DNA of 64,000 nt, taken from the NCBI GenBank assembly GCA_010909165.1, contig MU008175.1:797370-861369 (forward strand), written 5' to 3'. A program made the position numbers and the translations under genes. Each line of letters starts with the position of its first letter. Within the stretch, counting starts at the first letter, position 1. The stretch comes from Anthoceros angustus (lineage: Eukaryota; Plantae; Anthocerotophyta). Positions 201-38,982 of this stretch are shown one piece after another. Below the pieces are notes generated by a model. The model saw only the letters and a program-made list of their open reading frames with translations, had not been told where the DNA came from and did not search any database.

Positions 201-861
201 CTAGCTGCGAGAATGGTCCATGGAGTCCGATCCCGCGAGAGGCAATTCCGGTCCGCCTGCGCGCGCTGCAGCTGCGAGAACGCGCGCAGGGCATGGAAAG
301 GCAGAGGGCGGGGCGGGAAGGGAGGGGGAGGCGAAGGGAACGTGGAGACACAAAACGGGCAGCAGCCAAGGCAGAAACATGCAGGCCCGGGACTCCGTCC
401 CGACGCCCCGCGCCCCCGTTTCCCCCCTCGATTCGGTTGAGTTGGAGCGAGAAGGCAATCGATTTTATGATGCCGTCCCGTACGCCTTGTGAAAAAGTCG
501 CCATCGGATGCAGTTTGCAGCCTGCAGGACCCAGGACAGGGAGGACGATCATCATTCTACAAAATCGCCGGCAACCGAGAGGGGACCGTCGCGGCGGCGG
601 CCCCGCTCCACCTCCCCGTCCTTTATTGCCCGCCCGTCTCGTTTGAAGTTTGAGAGGCGGGCTAGGGGCTAGAGGCTGGAGGCTAGGCTACGCGTGTGTA
701 CATACATGCGGTATGTCAAGTGGACTCTAATAGACTTCTTTTCTTCTAGTTAGGCAGGGATTTTTATGTACCCATGTACATATTGTTCTTTTTCAAGCTT
801 CGACACCATATGGCTCCTGCCGTGTGCTATTGGCCCCTTGTTCGCTTTACTCATTCAAATC

Positions 862-966
862 GGACCGTGGAGACTTTATGTAAGAAAAGAGATGGAAAAA
901 CCCATCTACCCTCAAGGAAAAGGGGAACAACCCAACCAAGGGCACCATGTCAGGGGGACTAAACCC
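862..966 (-). mobile_element. Extremely 5'-truncated non-LTR retrotransposon insertion (3' UTR only)
   Basis: The reverse complement aligns with the 3' UTR at about 35615-35714 (AGTCCC.CTG.CATGGTGCCCTT.GTTGGGTT...GGTAGATGGGTTTTTCC...TAAAGTCT). It is flanked by a 12-bp direct repeat CTCATTCAAATC at 850-861 and 967-978. Confidence 0.75.
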
Positions 967-988
967 CTCATTCAAATCCGTTGTGCAA

Positions 989-1046
989 ATGCCAGGCCCA
1001 CATGAGAGAGATGTTGGCTTTATGCCGGGCCCACATGAGAGAGATG
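989..1046. repeat. Short tandem duplication (25 bp x2, period 33)
   Basis: ATGCC(A/G)GGCCCACATGAGAGAGATG at 989-1013 and 1022-1046, one mismatch. Confidence 0.85.
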
Positions 1047-1739
1047 AGTGCATTGTCTTCTTGGAGCGAGCTGAGAGCCCCACAAATCAAGCTACTCCCT
1101 TTTATTGAGAGGGTCCTTCAAAGGGTTTCTTACATCGACGGTGGTTTGTCCAACATACTTCGCCTTTTTGAGGCCCCTCTTGGATCAATCCAGCTTCAAA
1201 CCATACAATGGAGCTTGATCGTAGATACTCAAGGACATTCGAATACGTTTTCTCAACCTTTTAGATTGTGCTATCGAGCTTAAAAATGAGATTCGCCAAC
1301 TTGACAACAATCAGTGCGACATCATCGTGCAATTTATGCATTGTTATGCCCAGCATCGCCAAAGAGTAAACCCATCCTGCATTCGAAAGAGAGTCAATAA
1401 GCCTGACCATGTAGATGTTCACCCCTGTCCCAATCTTGGCCCCTGGATCCTATCGTTGTACGGTGCGTTCGTAGAGGTACTAATAGATTGTGTCATTGAA
1501 CAGATGGATTAACCCACAAGAAATTTTAGGACAAAGATTAGACTTATCAAAAGCATCTTGGGATCGATATGGTTTCAACAATGGAATCCCTCTTTTAAGC
1601 TACTTCACAGAAAAAACATAATGTTTAACAAATCTCCGGTCCCCTCAATCTATATTTCCGTGTATTGAGGGGACCCGAGACCTATTATTAATTTTGTAAT
1701 GTAGCTTCACTAAGGGATAGTATAAGGAGCTACTAGCAC

Positions 1740-2830
1740 TGTGGACTTTGTGCGACAACTTGTTTCCGAACAACAATGCGATTGAACCTTGTAAAAAAAA
1801 AAGAAAAGCCTACAAAAGAAGAATGAAAAAGATTAGAATCAACCAAAAAGATAGCATCAATTTTGCAGGACAGCAAATCAACCTTGGAATTAAAAAACCT
1901 TACATTTCAGAATACAATCTCTTCCCGTCTCTGACTTGATAGAAGAACTTGATCAGCACCATATTAAGATCCTTCAGTGAAATGTCCTTCACGGGCATGT
2001 CCCACTTTTTAACCCCGTTAGCTTTCATGAAGCTCCTAAGTCTATATCTACACCAATGATTAGACCGTTTTGACCCACTAGACCCCCCATTCACGGCATT
2101 CTCAGCTACATTCTGAGGGACGTCTACATCAAAACCATTCTCACGACATGTGCTTCATCAACCTCATAAACACCACAAACAAAATCGTTGTCACTACTAA
2201 CACGCAGAGGCTTAATCATAGCAACGCCTTCAGCGCATCAAGCAGTAAATCAAGAATATCGTCAAATTGCCCTGGAACTCCAAACTCACCTTCAGATTGT
2301 AGTTGCACTTGAGCTCCTACCTGGCAGAAATTCCTATTTAACAGTTTGAACCACCATGAGATCATCAGAGGTAGGAATGAAAGTACTCATAAAAAAAACA
2401 CAACCCCCTGTTAATTACAGGCATGTAGTAAGTAATCTTCTTCAATGGCCCCTCTACCAAGACCGGAGGCCTAGTGTCAACCCTCTTTCTTTTCTTTGCG
2501 AATCCTGGAACAAGGAGCCTTGAAAACAAATTTAAGGGGAACTAAAAGATTTCCCTCGTTATTAACAATAACTTCATCCATAACACCATTATCCCCTAGG
2601 CATTGTCCCATAGTGTGCTTGTACATGTACAGTATCCTTTTCCTTGAGTTAGGCTCAATCTGGACTGCGCAAGGCCTTCAAGCACTTCTTGGATTTCGCC
2701 ACATGTCCTTATCTTGTCGTTTCGATTATCTGCATTTTCACCACCTATTTTATTTAGACCTTTCCCAATGTTGCATGCCAGATGATACTCCATGAATGGC
2801 GGTCATAAATAACGATCCCTTTAAGTTAGG
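1740..2830 (-). mobile_element. Decayed transposon-like ORF with a Crypton/DUF3504-associated N-terminal-like segment
   Basis: Frames are broken by many stops. 1900-2094 reads KRSNHWCRYRLRSFMKANG...DISLKDLNMVLIKFFYQVRDGKRLY, resembling the W...F...L..F..VR.DG..Y pattern of Crypton-derived proteins. Boundaries are approximate. Confidence 0.35.
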
Positions 2831-5285
2831 TGGGTAGACTAAAACGAAGACAAAAACTATCAAGAAGCAGATCTACCTTGACAGAAACAGAATAATGCTA
2901 AAGCTTGCTGAAAAAGCTTTATGCTGAAAAATCAGGGAAGAAAAATCACTACACGAGACAACTAAATATTAAGAATCAACTAATTATCACTGATATTCTT
3001 GATATTTAAATAAATATCAGCGATAAGGGATTGTGAATGAGTACTTGCTTCTTTTTTTTTTTGTGATATTTATTGTATTAAAAAAAAGCTAGTACAGATA
3101 GCGCCCATTTAGCCTAGGGGCGAAGGATGCATACTTGCTTGAGATGGACTTTGTTTGTGTGTTAGCTGGAAGAACAATTGCTTAAGAGGCCCCGGGCTTG
3201 GATGAATTCTGAAATGGGGAAGATGTCAAACACAATTCCAAGATGGAGAGGGCGATACCAATACTGAAAGGCATCTGTCACGAATGATGTTAGCATAGGT
3301 ATTGCGGACGCATATGTATAAATGCTATTGGTATTGACATAGTAGCATACTCATCATTTTGGGTATACATGTGTATTGGATATGTGTTTAGAGGTATTAC
3401 CACCTGTATTCGGTATACGCGAATGGTGACGGATCCAGCCCTAGCAAGCAAGGTTTTTGTAGCTGCGAAAGGGATTGTGGGAAGTGGTGCCATCAGCCAA
3501 GACGGGAAGCGTGGAGATGATGGCCAAGATCTATTTTTGGGAGGCCGTTACCCTACAAGGAGAAGGCGAGGCGAGAGTTGCAGCAGTCATCAGAAGACTT
3601 GACACAAGCCTGTCATTAAGGTGCATACTGGACAGTCACCAAGGGGATTTAATCCTTGCATGCAGGTCTAGGCTAGAAGGAAGTCTGAACAATCTGGGAT
3701 ACGAATTCCTACAGTGAACAACACATTTGGCTGACAGTTTCTTAAGAAGTGTTGTGTGTGTGTTTTCCATTGAATGCTTTGTCTGAGCATACTTTCGCGT
3801 TGCCGGGCAGAATTCGCTGCTTGCTAACGGATGTCTTGCACATCCAGTGCGTTGCTGAGCGGTGAAGGCGTTCTGCACATCTTGTTGACGAAGAACATGG
3901 ACAATTTTTCCTATTTAGTCCCTTTCACAAATCGTGGTGCAGCTGGCCAAGCTGCCTTCCGACCAGTCCAGGCAAATGTATTATAATCCATTACTTGCTG
4001 CTCATGTGTGGTGATGAGTTTGCTGGTTGAAGGTTTCCTTGTGTGTGTGATGTTGTTGCACGACAATCGCCATTGGCGTCGTCTACTGCTGGTTTATGCG
4101 AGACGTTGCTTTCACAATGCTTCTTCAGATGCCGTCCAATCTGCTCTGTTTCAATGCCACAAGAGCTTCGAGGGCGGGCCTGGGCAAGACCGGTGAGTCC
4201 TGCCTTCGCAAGCTAAGCTCAAAGTAGTGGGAATTTCTATTCAAGCGTCTAGATTGAACTCAGTTGTGTTTGCAGGTATGAACGCATTGCAAATGCCCAG
4301 ACAAGAGGTGGGTGTTGTGCTGCTGCTTCCTGGAACCTTCCTTCCTTCCGCATTGTCCAGCAACAGTGCTAGAAGCTCAGCAGCTCACAAGCTTAGGAGC
4401 CGGTTCCTGAATCCTAAAATGGGTACTTGATGATGTCAAAAACCCATCAGCGTAAAATTGCAGTCTATAGCTTGGGCGGCCAACGATTAAATCAATTGGG
4501 CTTGTACTTTAGCAAGTTCCAGCCACAACACGTCATTCTGGCTGCTTTCTTCCGCGGAGATCGGAAGCTGTAGGTTGCTGACAAGTGGGCAGTGGGCACT
4601 AGCTAAGGTGAGGTAGACACGAGCCGCCAGATTTGCACCATTCCTTTGCTCGAGATTTCTTGCTTTCCATTCTGCTGCATTTTACACGAGAGTGGGCTTC
4701 ATAGATTTGATTATTTGTACCAGGAATTTGCATCCGATTTGAACACGATACAAATCAGTGGGGTTCACAGACATCCAAAATGAGCAGGTTCAACGAAAAA
4801 GAATTTACCTTTTTCATCCTCTAGAAAGATAAAAGAGACTCGTAGTCCGGGTGCTGTGGAGCATCGACAACACCCGGACTAAACTTTCACAGATCTCGAG
4901 CAAAGCACTCGATCTGCAGAGGTTATGTCTCACACGCCGGGCTCACGTGAGGAAATACCCGCGTGTCGGGACGCCCGGCTTAGAGCAGGCTCGGGCAAAC
5001 GGCCCCACCTATTTTGCGCCATAGCCCTTCCTCACAAGTGCTCCCTAATACGTTATCCAGAGGTGAGGCATATATACACTCATATACACTATGGTCAATT
5101 GGAGATGATATGACATTCTCTCATTGCTGCATATGGTAGGTTTATACCTACCAAAATTGTAGATATAAAGTGACAAGACCTATTAAGGCATCAATCTTTT
5201 AATTCAATAGTACTTTTATATAAATGTGCATGAATTACATTATCAAATTGCTTATCAAACCTGGCTGACCTAAATCAATGTACTA

Positions 5286-33540: not shown

Positions 33541-34869
33541 GCTTGAGCCGCGAGCGGGAATCGGGATCTGGGAATCGGAAATCGGAAATCTGCTGTGCCG
33601 CAGAGCAGGACGCACTTCACCCGGAATCCAACGTAACTGTTTGAACGATTTGGGTGTGACCTCCAATACATGAAGACATGTTTACGGCTTGTCCAGAAAC
33701 AGGACACCACCTTTAGCACCCGTTTCTAACTAACTCGTGGTGCCACCGCGCTTCCCTGTATGAATGTACACTATAACTACCATGCACATATGTACTATCA
33801 TATACATATAACTACCATACTACCTGCGTGCGTCCTAGTTTGCCCATTCAATAGTGGATAATTAAAGTACTATGTATGAGCTAGTAATCATTAAATCATT
33901 TTTTTATTTAAGATGATAATGATAGGAGTATCTTTCCACCTATAATTATGGGGTACTGTAAAACGTGCAGAGATTTAAAGGTCGTTCCATTTGAGTATAT
34001 CTATTTTACATATATTTATATATATGAAATCCTAAACCTAATTTTGAAGAGAATAACCTAAAAACTCATGTTTCACAGGAGAATATGAGCAAATAAATCA
34101 TAATGTACTAAGTTGTTATACCACTAGGATGCTGGAAGGGGTTAAAAATATTTTATACTCTAAAAAACAAAGGGGTTAAAAAAATATGGAATTTTTCATA
34201 TCTAGCCTAGGGATTTGGAATGCTTATGACATCATATGGCAGTCGTGGATCACAGTCAATGAACTAGGTAAATGATTATTAGCTCTACCATTGCAGTCAC
34301 AAGATTTTCAAGCTCCATAAACACCTCAGAGAAACGGGTCAGGTTTGATATTTTGAAGCCTCTGCTTAGATTTAAGAGAGAAAATTATTCGTAGGGCTCA
34401 TAGTTTGCTAGAGGCCATAGCGGATGATAATTTCCGCTTTGCGACCCACAATCCAAAGTTCATCTAAATTTGATGGAATGCTAAACTTCATCATTTGTAA
34501 TCTAATCAACACATTGTTGTTTACTAATCTGATCTGTGTTTTTGCACAAAAAAAAAAACATTGGGAACTGAACCAAAGTGACTTAGCAACTAGTTGCAGC
34601 ATACCAGATTGCTCGTGAGCTATAGGGGTTAATCTCAGCACACCAGAATGCTAGTGAGTTGGACAATCTCGCAGAGATTTGCTTGCCTAATCACAGGTTG
34701 ATTTTGGCGGCCTGATCAATAGACCGCAATTTCTTGAGAATGTTACATTTAGGCTCTCTTAGCGTAATTAAGTTGAAACTTCCTTCTAAAGTCAACAAAT
34801 TATTGTTAAAATTTACTAAAGAAGTTTTTGGAAAACATTACATGATTTCAGTATTCAGTATTCGGTATT

Positions 34870-35714
34870 CAGGCGTTCCGCATTGCACTAGCAACTTTTT
34901 CCACCGCGATGCGTTTTCGCCTTGGCTTGGTCTGTCCTCTAGCGTGCTCTCTTTCAGCTTGCAGTTGAGAGGCCCCTCTCGATGGCTTTGGGATGCACTT
35001 GGCTCGCTGTCCCGCGGGTAGGCAGCGTATCGCTACGCATGACGCCGTCCGGGACGTCACGTTCTCTATTGCTAGGGAAGGCGGGTTCCTTCCATTTAGG
35101 GAGCGCCTTTACTCCCTGCTCAACGGGGTTTTTCTTAGGGCAGATCTATTTTTGACCTGGGGGATCAAGTTTTGGTTGCTGATATGGTTGTAACCGATCC
35201 CACTCGGGACAGTGTCTGCAAACATGTTATTCTTAATCCTCCAGGTTGGGCGGTAGAGGGATGTGCGACGGCTAAGGTCTACAAGTACTCTCCTATGCAG
35301 GACGGCCATGCCTTCGTCCCCCTTGCCATTGAGACTCACGGAGCCATGGGCAAGGATTTCTCTAGGTTCGTCAAGGCCTGCGCCAAGGCTTATCATAGTC
35401 GCAAGAATGGGGTTGGCTTCTCCCTTTCTTGTATTGTTGCCTTCTTCTGGCAGAGGGTTTCCATCGCTCTGCAGAGGGCATTGGCCAACACAGTATTCAA
35501 AACGACAGTGAGCGCGGGAGATGCAGCTTCTTTGACACCGGTAGTAAGTAGGCCTTTTCACATCCCTGACCACAAAGTTCTTCAAGCGGTTGGTAGTTTT
35601 GAAATGCGTGATCGTGGGGGCTAGTCCCTCTGGCATGGTGCCCTTCGTTGGGTTTTTCCCCCTTTGTTTTTGGGGTAGATGGGTTTTTCCCATCTCTTTT
35701 TTATAATAAAGTCT
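34870..35714 (+). mobile_element. 5'-truncated RLE-type (CRE-like) non-LTR retrotransposon relic
   Basis: TAMRFRLG...C.*...DGFGMHLARC..G.QRIATHDAVRD (Zn knuckle), then RAD...ADMVVTDP...KVYKY...FVPLAIETHG (restriction-like endonuclease). One stop and a frameshift near 35160. The 3' UTR has AATAAA. Confidence 0.82.
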
Positions 35715-36397
35715 TCTTTTTCCCTATTATAACCCCGTATATTGCTTCTTATAGCGCCATATGCACGTAGTTCAAAATTTGTAATTGCTTATGGCTTGTT
35801 ACATTTCATAGCAGCTCTATCATACGGTTCCGTATGATCCAATGCATTAAACATTTATAAAAAAAATAAAAAAACTTAGTATGTTGCTCTTCTTTAACTT
35901 TGACGAGGGATGTGATACTCTTGTAGAATTGAAAGACTATAGCTATTATCGTATCTATATGTTTCATAGAAATTAATAAGCAGAGTTTTATAGTACATAT
36001 CTTGTGGCAGTTGTTGTATTTTAGTGATGTGTACTCAATCAAAATGAAGACATGCATGGGGTACAAATGATGGGCTAAAGAAGAGCCAGGAAGGTGGCGA
36101 AAGCCGCCCTAAGAGTATCTGCAGCAAGTTCAAATTCTCAACCTTGGCTTACCACTATGCATTGGCTTCATCCAATGTGGTCAAAAGAGACTCCTTTACA
36201 AAGAGTTGGTGCAGTCACTACCTCAAGAATCAGCTATGTATCTTGCTGTAGCTTCCTCAATGTCATAAAAATTCTTGAAAATTGTGCTATTATTATCTAT
36301 GTTTGTTAATGAACATCTCATATAAAATATGGTTCTAGAGTGTAACAGGTGAACGAGAACAGGATACTATTGGAAACAGTGTCTCTCGCATACAGGC

Positions 36398-36623
36398 TGG
36401 GCCGAAGAGGAAACACCCTCGGAGAACCCTTTGCTCGGCGTGGTTTTACTAAGGGGGTCCAGCAGGATGTCCAGTGCCTTGAGGTTAGGACGTCAAGGCA
36501 ACTGGGTGAAGAATTTCTTCGCTTGTTGACATTTTTATGCTTTTCGCTATGTACCGTACCTGTTGTTTTTGTTGTTAGTCTGCCCTAATCGTCTTGGGTG
36601 GTTGGCGAATGATCCAACCCTAG
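36398..36623 (+). promoter_or_regulatory. Site II element plus telo-box upstream of the ubiquitin/rps2 unit
   Basis: TGGGCC at 36398-36403 and AACCCTAG at 36616-36623. This pair is typical of plant ribosomal-protein and mitochondrial-protein promoters. Confidence 0.45.
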
Positions 36624-36681
36624 GCCTTTGCGGGATGCGCTCCATGGCTGAGCAGGGGATCAAGCTGGTGGTGGCCTCGCG

Positions 36682-36910
36682 GTGTAGATCTTCGTGATAG
36701 CAGTGTCGTGGAAGACGATCGCATTGGAGGTGGAGGCTTCCGACGCAAGCGACAGTGTCAAGGACAAGATCCGGGACAAGGAAGGGATTCTTGCGGACGT
36801 TCAGAGGCTGATTTTCGGCGGGAAGCAGCTGGAAGGTGGCCCGGGTAGTGGCAGAGTACAACGTTGAGAAGGAGTCTAGCCTGCAGCCGGGGCTGCGGCT
36901 GAGGGGAGGT
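36682..36910 (+). pseudogene. Degenerate ubiquitin unit directly abutting rps2
   Basis: [52 protein letters not shown][+1 C at 36841][23 protein letters not shown]. Colinear with 76-aa ubiquitin, with ATG-CAG replaced by GTG-TAG. Confidence 0.9.
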
Positions 36911-37627
36911 ATGCACAGCTCCGGCGGCGTTGTTGTGGAGAAGCTGATCAAGGCAGGAGCGCATGTGGGGAACCGGGTGCCAGCCACAGATTTCCACCAG
37001 TACTTGCATGGCTTCAGGAACGGGCTGGCCATCATCGACTGCGAGAAGACGCTGGTGGGCTTGCGGCGGGCATGCAATGTGATCGGGAACATCGTGCGGG
37101 CGGACGGCCATGTGCTGGCCGTGAACACCAACCCTCGCTACAACAAGCTGGTGGAGCTGATGGCCACCAACTGCAGCCAGAGCTACATCAACCACAAGTG
37201 GACGGGAGGCTTCCTCACCAACCGGAAGCACATGCTGAACGTCCAGGCGTGCTACGAGGAGCTGTCCCAGGACCTGTCCGGCACCGATGTGGCTTCCTCC
37301 TTCGACTCCTTCCCCCGCTTCAGGAAGATGCGCAAGTGCTTCCAGGGAGTCCGGACGCGCAACGCCCCCGACTGCCTCCTCATCCTGAACGCCGCGCAGA
37401 ACGGGAACGCCATCCTGGAGGCCCATCAGCTGCGCATCCCTATCGTGAGTGTGGTCGATCCCAGCGTCCCCAACAGGTTGCAGAAGCTCATCCCGTACCC
37501 CGTCCCGGGAAACGATCAGTCCGCTGAGTTCATCTACCTGTTCTGCAATCTGGTTCAGAAAACGATTCTGTTGTCACAGAGGCAAGCTGCTGCTGCTTCC
37601 CGCCCCCGCGCCGGCTCTTTCCGGTAA
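36911..37627 (+). CDS. rps2: Nuclear copy of mitochondrial ribosomal protein S2 (uS2m), intronless, 238 aa
   Basis: GAHVG, GFRNGLAIID.EKTL, QSYINHKW.GGFLTN, FPRFRKM.KCF.G, AILEA.QL.IPIV..VD and YPVP.ND. Closely resembles bryophyte mtDNA-encoded Rps2 but has GC3-rich nuclear codon usage. Confidence 0.92.
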   Translation: MHSSGGVVVEKLIKAGAHVGNRVPATDFHQYLHGFRNGLAIIDCEKTLVGLRRACNVIGNIVRADGHVLAVNTNPRYNKLVELMATNCSQSYINHKWTGGFLTNRKHMLNVQACYEELSQDLSGTDVASSFDSFPRFRKMRKCFQGVRTRNAPDCLLILNAAQNGNAILEAHQLRIPIVSVVDPSVPNRLQKLIPYPVPGNDQSAEFIYLFCNLVQKTILLSQRQAAAASRPRAGSFR

Positions 37628-38982
37628 CGTGTTAATTCCAAGGGACTTCCTTGCACGCAATCGACTCCGTTTTCGCAATGCTTTGCTTTCATTCCGCTCC
37701 AGCACAGCAGGCCTCTCCAAGCGTAGGCTGTGCATCTAGAGCTAGGGTTTGGAGGCACCTAGAGCCTAGCTATCTCCTCCTCATCCAATTTGAACAAGAC
37801 GTCCGGGTGGTCAGGAGGGCAATTGCTCCGACGCTCGTAGGCGTAGAGTAAATTGAAGGCGGTGAGAAAAGGGATGTAGATAATTAAAACCCCCGTTACA
37901 TGACACGAGGCATTCCGTTCGACGGCACCTCGTGCGTCGGGAAATGCCAAAATTGGCGCGGGAGCCCGCAGGAACAGCCTCGACCGTCACGTCGATACGG
38001 TTGCCAGAGGTCGGCGACCAGCGGTCGCAGAGATGTGCGGAGGTGGAAAGGGCAAGCAACCCTCCCGCCGAGTCCAGTCGGCGTCAACGGCGAGCCACAC
38101 GGACAACACGTCCGCGGACCGTTTTCACCGGGGGTACCCAGTCATGAAAAAAAACTGTTGCTGGCACTGGCTGGCATCGATGCCTTGCCTTTCTCTGCTC
38201 TGCTCTGCTCGCTCTGCTTTGCGTTGCGTTGCTTGGCGTCGCGTCGCCCGCCTTCCCGGGATCTCATCTTCCCCGAGCAGCAGCTGGCGGCGAGCGCGTA
38301 TCGATCCCGGCATCGCCATCTCCCGGCGCTTTGAGCCTGCGCGCATCCCAGCCTCGCCTGCTGGACCCGCCGTCACCTTCCGCAGAGCTCGCAGCAGCTG
38401 CATCCGCGTCGCGCGGAGCGGGATAGAGACGGGCAGGCAGTGGGGAGTGGGGGAGACGAGGGGAGACCGGGCGGGAGGAAGGAAGGAGGGAAGGGAAGGA
38501 AAGGGAAGGGAAGGAAAGGAGAGGAGGAGCGGGTGGAGGAGTCCAGGATGACGGATCTGGAGGCCGCTGCTGGATGCGGATTCTGACGCCCATTTGCGTG
38601 GCTCCGGGCCCGGATGCTCCCCCGAGCTGGAGCGGGCGGAGTTCGCAGTTCGCGGGCCTGCGGAAGTGAGAGCGCGCGCTGCTGGATGCCACATTGCCGC
38701 TTCGCGGATCTGTGACCGGGGTGGAGGGTGGAATGCGGGGCCTCGGTATCCGGTCTCAGGATCGGAGGTGGGTGGGGAATTTCCGCCATGGAGCAAGGCA
38801 AGGTGTAGATGGCGCATGGTGGAGAAGGGGATTTTCTGCAGGATCCAGCAATTGGAATTCGTGGGCGGGATTGTGCTGTACCGGGTTGGGTAGGGGCGGG
38901 GATTGGTGTTAGGTCAGGTGGGTGAGGAGTCGCCGGCTGTCGTGTGATGTAGAGAGGAATTGGGTCGGGTCGGTTGCCAGTC

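Follow-up and report, generated by a model that had tools for sequence, protein, structure and literature searches.

The window analyzed here is a 64,000-nucleotide stretch of the nuclear genome of the hornwort Anthoceros angustus (contig MU008175.1, positions 797,370 to 861,369 of the forward strand), and all positions below are counted from its first letter unless another contig is named. On the plus strand at 36911..37627 it carries an intact nuclear gene for a mitochondrial-type ribosomal protein uS2 (Rps2), with 238 codons followed by a TAA stop (PF00318, E=2.6e-42). Directly upstream on the same strand, at 36682..36910, lies a dead full-length ubiquitin unit of 229 nt (PF00240, E=1.6e-10; tblastn, E=2.6e-19), in which the codons CTG CGG CTG AGG GGA GGT for the terminal LRLRGG have been kept (36893..36910) and abut the Rps2 ATG at 36911 without any linker. 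A first-pass annotation, made from the letters alone, had described a decayed full-length ubiquitin ending in LRLRGG immediately before the Rps2 start, and all of these elements were found in place.

The match to the Ribosomal_S2 family (PF00318) covers residues 12-220 of the protein and positions 1-214 of the 216 in the profile. The closest named matches were mitochondrial rps2 products of mosses and liverworts (Bartramia, Aneura and Pellia) and of Nitella, with 53-57% identity. A maximum-likelihood tree was built from streptophyte mitochondrial rps2 and bacterial outgroups, with plastid S2 left out, and the window protein was placed within the streptophyte mitochondrial clade with 100/100 support against the bacterial sequences. 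The gene has the composition of nuclear DNA (GC content at third codon positions, GC3, of 0.85) and its flanking DNA is likewise of nuclear type, in agreement with the nuclear codon usage that had been claimed for it. In an alignment of these proteins (A2), Met1 of the window Rps2 coincides with Met1 of the mitochondrion-encoded rps2 of moss, liverworts, lycophyte and Nitella, indicating that no presequence has been added, as had also been proposed; the borrowed 5′ part is ubiquitin and not a mitochondrial presequence. An exact look-up in the protein collection did not return the window's 238-residue and 263-residue products.

The ubiquitin unit is disabled at both its start and its middle. 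At 36682..36687 on the plus strand GTG TAG replaces the ATG CAG of ubiquitin, such that the start codon is lost and a stop stands at codon 2, and a CCC run at 36840..36842 (plus strand) contains a single inserted base, shifting the frame at about ubiquitin codon 53. Frame 1 from 36682 to 36867 reads V, a stop, then IFV...KQLEGG, and it is this frame that produced the PF00240 match, to profile positions 1-49. A tblastn search with intact ubiquitin recovered the relic in two halves, one at 36688-36840 and the other, shifted to the following frame, at 36818-36910, which together gave the E value above; the same method found no second ubiquitin-like stretch within the 64-kb window. Both the GTG-TAG start and the frameshift were as previously reported, the insertion falling within 36840-36842. 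Compared with canonical plant ubiquitin, 28 of the 76 residues differ, among them K6I, L8V, I23S, H68Q, L69P and V70G, with changes on the surface as well as in the core. The LRLRGG codons of the relic remain in frame with Rps2, yet no start codon precedes them.

The same arrangement was found intact in a relative. P0001, the closest protein to the window Rps2 among 5.8 billion (74% identity over the Rps2 part), is a 322-residue product of one open reading frame (ORF) in which a 76-residue ubiquitin ending in LRLRGG runs without linker into the Met-His of Rps2. It matched both PF00240, over the full profile (E=1.9e-31), and PF00318 (E=9.1e-46), and it is encoded on a 5.9-kb Logan contig, L001, from run SRR33208241. 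Its ubiquitin differs from that of plants by only five conservative substitutions (I13V, S19G, I23V, D24E and A28S) and retains all seven lysines, the L8/I44/H68/V70 patch and the RLRGG tail. The presence of an intact in-frame ubiquitin upstream of a relative's rps2 had been named as the decisive check on the first-pass annotation, and P0001 supplies it. A translatable N-terminal ubiquitin is present in P0001 and absent from the window gene, which is a descendant of the ubiquitin-fusion family and not a present member of it.

At the nucleotide level, L001 and the window stay colinear from a point 5 nt ahead of the ubiquitin start until close to the Rps2 end, with 72% identity over 917 nt, and the LRLRGG-Met1 junction is identical in the two (window 36893-36913; L001 5008-5028). 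Alignment of the relic with the intact ubiquitin of L001 paired 229 with 228 nt and could place the extra base at 36840, 36841 or 36842, the best register being regained by dropping any one of the three; 159 of 228 nucleotides and 46 of 76 residues were identical. In the tree, the Rps2 parts of the window protein and P0001 formed a clade with 100/100 support on a long shared stem (0.61). The non-canonical residues of the P0001 ubiquitin speak against L001 being a chimera formed with an ordinary polyubiquitin gene, and the window shows the same ubiquitin-Rps2 arrangement independently of L001.

Rps2 is under purifying selection. Between the window and L001 lineages dN/dS was 0.14 at a dS of ~1.3, indicating that both copies are working genes and that they split deep in the past. 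To judge from the sequences, a single transfer and a single fusion took place before these lineages diverged. Between the relic and the intact ubiquitin, pN was 0.20 and pS 0.63, with 19, 14 and 36 differences at first, second and third codon positions, arguing that the decay was not neutral over the whole period since the split. As a rough estimate, this suggests that constraint on the ubiquitin persisted for most of the interval after the L001 split and was lost over roughly the final quarter of the window's branch, leaving it free to decay.

Contigs of four public runs (X1, X4, X12 and X17) were compared with the window over 36000-38200. X1 is a separate library, probably RNA, from the window's own species (species A), and it yielded a 1204-nt contig matching 36622..37825 on the plus strand with no differing letter and no gap: a transcript-like, unspliced unit made up of a 5′ leader, the Rps2 coding sequence and a 3′ untranslated region (UTR). 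In the related species D and E, contigs of 1275 and 1300 nt aligned from 36620 and 36618, respectively, to 37638, with 65 differences each. These short, bounded contigs with coinciding ends contrast with the 24.6-kb contig recovered at the locus from a DNA run (X4) of species B, suggesting that they are mRNA-like. A second Rps2-like contig of at least 80% likeness was found in none of the four runs.

The difference-free X1 contig runs across the relic, indicating that the stop and the frameshift, which had been flagged at 36685 and 36841, are real and not errors of assembly. Since the relic is contained in an unspliced transcript-like contig, it represents untranslated 5′ leader, of which it forms part over a total of 289 nt, which supports the proposal that the ubiquitin decayed into leader sequence. 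Rescue of the ubiquitin frame by splicing, either through an intron whose acceptor is the TAG at 36685 or through a mini-intron at the frameshift, was considered and rejected, the X1 contig being colinear with no joints in 36622-37638. By contrast, a strong promoter acquired with the ubiquitin, as originally envisaged, found no support: true ubiquitin transcripts of that run reached contig k-mer depths of 547-3300, compared with ~98 here, though such depth measures expression poorly.

A scan of 36560-36913 for ATG codons identified an upstream ORF (uORF) of 20 codons at 36635..36697 on the plus strand, with a second in-frame ATG at 36644. The leader holds no ATG ahead of Rps2 other than these two (36635 and 36644); there is none between 36645 and 36910, so the relic contains none. 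The uORF has a G at position -3 and overlaps the first codons of the relic. Folding of 36622-36925 gave z=+0.5, with 68 of 100 shuffled sequences folding equally well; the leader has no unusual RNA structure and a regulatory RNA element of this kind was rejected. In L001, a 4-codon uORF (MEGR, 4759-4773) lies 39 nt 5′ of the ubiquitin start of the intact fusion gene.

Species B, D and E carry the same gene at ~94-97% identity. Because the alignment of the D and E contigs with the window's decayed ubiquitin continues across the relic, degeneration must predate the split of these species from species A. Species E shows one deletion and one insertion relative to the window, as read from the record coordinates. 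The contig of species B starts 71 nt before 36867 (window 36796-36866), and its letters there are unlike those of the window. Within the coding sequence, at 37586, where Rps2 has an Ala-rich tail, 3 nt are missing from all three of species B, D and E, the window having an extra Ala codon in a GCT run near the C-terminus. The 3′ UTR extends from 37628 to the end of the X1 contig (37628..37825, plus strand) and is poorly conserved: over 37638-37900, species B, D and E replace 58-200 nt of the window by 90-224 other letters just past the stop, with joints at 37638 and 37646.

The surroundings of the two genes were also compared. L001 encodes an F-box protein with a weak match to an At3g26010-like beta-propeller (L001 3056-4456, minus strand), divergently oriented and ~340 nt from the fusion gene; a plant-type F-box gene beside the fusion indicates that L001 is land-plant genomic DNA. 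No counterpart was present in the window, and synteny through this neighbour was discarded. Upstream of the window gene, overlapping ORFs of 194 residues (minus strand) and 150 residues (plus strand, without a Pfam match) occupy 35109-35693, flanked by AT-rich DNA (GC 0.27-0.42 at 33750-34950 and 35550-36449); they may be the remnant of a transposon.

Hornworts have moved or lost almost all of their mitochondrial ribosomal protein genes. For rps2, the mitochondrial copy is a pseudogene in Leiosporoceros, Phaeoceros and Anthoceros angustus and is absent from Nothoceros (PMC6082510, Table 2), such that the literature supports the loss that had been presumed, in four hornwort mitogenomes. The mitochondrial rpl6 is likewise a pseudogene in all four (PMC6082510). 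With rps2 dead or absent in every one of these published mitogenomes, the organellar loss appears to be as old as crown hornworts.

Further fusions were sought in large sequence collections. Word-indexed searches with the window Rps2 and with residues 60-322 of P0001 as queries returned P0001 as the only protein combining PF00240 and PF00318. An exhaustive search of 1.84 billion representatives, which were clustered at 50% identity and may hide close relatives, found 18 N-terminally extended proteins among the best 150 matches, none of them extended by ubiquitin. A metagenome scan with a second alignment (A1) gave 38 loci, all of mitochondrial-type rps2, and tblastn found ubiquitin in none; these loci were moss-like, with full-length identity of at most 56%. 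No description of ubiquitin fused to a mitochondrial ribosomal protein was found in the literature searched, subscription journals being outside its scope.

Taken together, these observations make it probable, in our judgement, that the window's nuclear gene for mitochondrial uS2 descends from a ubiquitin-fusion gene, and that the ubiquitin later decayed in the window's lineage. The shared junction and colinear DNA point to an ancestor of the window and L001 lineages in which a complete ubiquitin ending in LRLRGG was joined to Met1 of a mitochondrion-derived rps2 in a single ORF. L001 keeps this ORF intact, while in the window lineage the ubiquitin has decayed and Rps2 has stayed constrained.

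Deubiquitinases cleave linear ubiquitin fusions after Gly76 unless proline comes next. By analogy with ubiquitin-eL40 and ubiquitin-eS31, cytosolic deubiquitinases would cut the intact form at this position to give free ubiquitin and an Rps2 with its native, unextended N-terminus. Import of Rps2 may then follow, guided as in many mitoribosomal proteins by signals that are not cleaved off and lie either internally or at the N-terminus. In yeast, a conventional presequence is missing from up to 25% of the mitoribosomal proteins (PMC8724765), and import of an unextended Rps2 would thus be ordinary. The product of cleavage and the direct product of the Rps2 ATG would be one and the same protein (Met-His...), and with an identical mature protein in either case loss of the ubiquitin would have been nearly neutral, leaving the relic to decay to 5′ UTR. 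At present translation would start at 36911, either by scanning past the 20-codon uORF or by reinitiation behind it. As to the origin of the exact junction, one may speculate that microhomology was involved, as the GGT ATG CA(G) of a polyubiquitin repeat and the ATG CA(C) of rps2 share ATGCA; a true polyubiquitin contig in run X1, from the window's own species, aligns across the junction up to 36915, ATGCA included, which is weak evidence for such an origin.

Several points weigh against descent from a ubiquitin fusion in the form given here. The three large searches of protein collections, together with the metagenome scan, recovered a single intact fusion. The contig of species B matches the window from 36867 onward only, and either most of the relic has been replaced or deleted in that species or the end of the contig is unreliable; species D has one 1-nt deletion relative to the window, taken from the record coordinates and not located to a position. 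That X1, X12 and X17 are RNA is probable, a guess from bounded contigs of 1.2-1.3 kb with coinciding ends. The uORF, having a good start context ahead of the main ATG, may limit translation. Cleavage and import are putative steps, the translation start at 36911 is a predicted one, and an origin of the fusion ancestral to hornworts would rest on sequence divergence and the published mitogenome pattern.

The uORF, together with the stop and frameshift in the 5′ part, would also be expected if the whole locus were a dead retrocopy or NUMT-like pseudogene, with the working rps2 residing in the mitogenome or at a different nuclear locus, and an adjacency to ubiquitin devoid of functional history. 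However, all lesions are confined to the ubiquitin part, the 238-codon Rps2 ORF being intact and constrained at the dN/dS given above; a transcript-like contig is present in three species; no additional Rps2-like contig of at least 80% likeness emerged from the four runs; the published hornwort mitogenomes have an rps2 pseudogene or none; and the relative's version is one intact ORF. We consider a dead locus very improbable indeed. It is also conceivable that ubiquitin never was a cleavable leader, serving instead as a permanent ubiquitin-like domain or as a turnover mark for surplus Rps2, in which case its loss here was the loss of an extra function. Many proteins hold permanent ubiquitin-like domains, and cleavage itself is proposed here by analogy. 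Such domains normally lose the GG end, however, and P0001 keeps the exact LRLRGG-Met context and a near-canonical ubiquitin, which counts against an uncleaved domain. A tightly folded N-terminal ubiquitin is, in addition, known to be a poor substrate for import, and the Anthoceros-like lineage dispenses with the ubiquitin part and has the same Met1. A role of this kind is accordingly improbable, though a little less so than a dead locus.

The order of activation and fusion is a separate matter. The core of the first-pass interpretation is supported, but its view that entry into a ubiquitin gene was what activated rps2 is a proposal, and the ubiquitin may have been added afterwards. Rps2 may first have become a working nuclear gene, with ubiquitin captured upstream of it later, in the common ancestor of both lineages and possibly through the ATGCA microhomology; ubiquitin would then have conferred at most a benefit in expression or solubility. 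The window Rps2 is intact with neither ubiquitin nor presequence, so ubiquitin is not strictly needed for activation, and the polyubiquitin contig that aligns across the junction also fits a later capture. A fusion shared across a dS of ~1.3 is compatible with either order. We regard this late capture as rather unlikely, while giving it real weight, and continue to favour descent from a fusion gene whose ubiquitin was subsequently lost.

A classic question is how genes that have escaped from an organelle come to work in the nucleus. Two ways are known, presequence capture, often by joining another gene, and import without a presequence. We tentatively suggest, as a possibility that we would not yet call likely, that ubiquitin fusion is a recurrent, hornwort-wide expression route for relocated organellar ribosomal proteins whose N-termini tolerate no presequence scar, with ubiquitin acting as a scarless leader or cis-chaperone at or near activation and being dropped later in some lineages. 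If true, this would add a third general solution for targeting and expression in endosymbiotic gene transfer to the two already known. The device has been caught in two states, an intact ubiquitin-Rps2 precursor and a fossil preceding a gene that by now stands alone, constituting a natural experiment with and without ubiquitin; the pair shows that an established gene can do without the ubiquitin step. Genes for ubiquitin-fused ribosomal proteins, which had until now belonged to the cytosolic ribosome, are thereby extended to the mitochondrial one.

The classical ubiquitin-extension genes of this kind are Ub-eL40 (UBA52/UBI1-2) and Ub-eS31 (RPS27A/UBI3), with FUBI-eS30 (FAU) as a related case. 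Like the first two, P0001 has a complete ubiquitin whose LRLRGG is fused without linker to Met1 of a ribosomal protein, and release by deubiquitinases to a native N-terminus and free ubiquitin would be expected for it as for them. Unlike theirs, its partner is not a cytosolic, eukaryote-specific protein; it is a bacterial-type mitochondrial uS2 that came from organelle-to-nucleus transfer. Moreover, while Ub-eL40 and Ub-eS31 are pan-eukaryotic, ubiquitin-Rps2 is restricted to a lineage and dispensable, having decayed to 5′ UTR on the window's side, and five substitutions, as in the P0001 ubiquitin, are unusual where the ubiquitin contributes to the free pool.

A second comparison is with transferred mitochondrial genes that have been joined to nuclear genes: rps14 within sdh2 in maize and rice, rps10 behind leaders derived from hsp22 or hsp70, and sdh3 behind hsp70. 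As in these cases, the hornwort gene took its 5′ part from a nuclear gene unrelated to it, and the borrowed part can decay later; to judge by the published hornwort mitogenomes, its organellar copy is, as in those cases, defunct or gone. In contrast to them, the borrowed ubiquitin is no presequence and holds no targeting information, and its removal would take place in the cytosol by deubiquitinases, without a scar, rather than by the matrix processing peptidase as in presequence capture. Some angiosperm rps10 genes encode a nuclear mitochondrial ribosomal protein that has no presequence at all. The window gene, with its native N-terminus and no extension, resembles these and the presequence-less mitoribosomal proteins of yeast (PMC8724765), but unlike either of them it carries the fossil of what was probably a cleavable leader.

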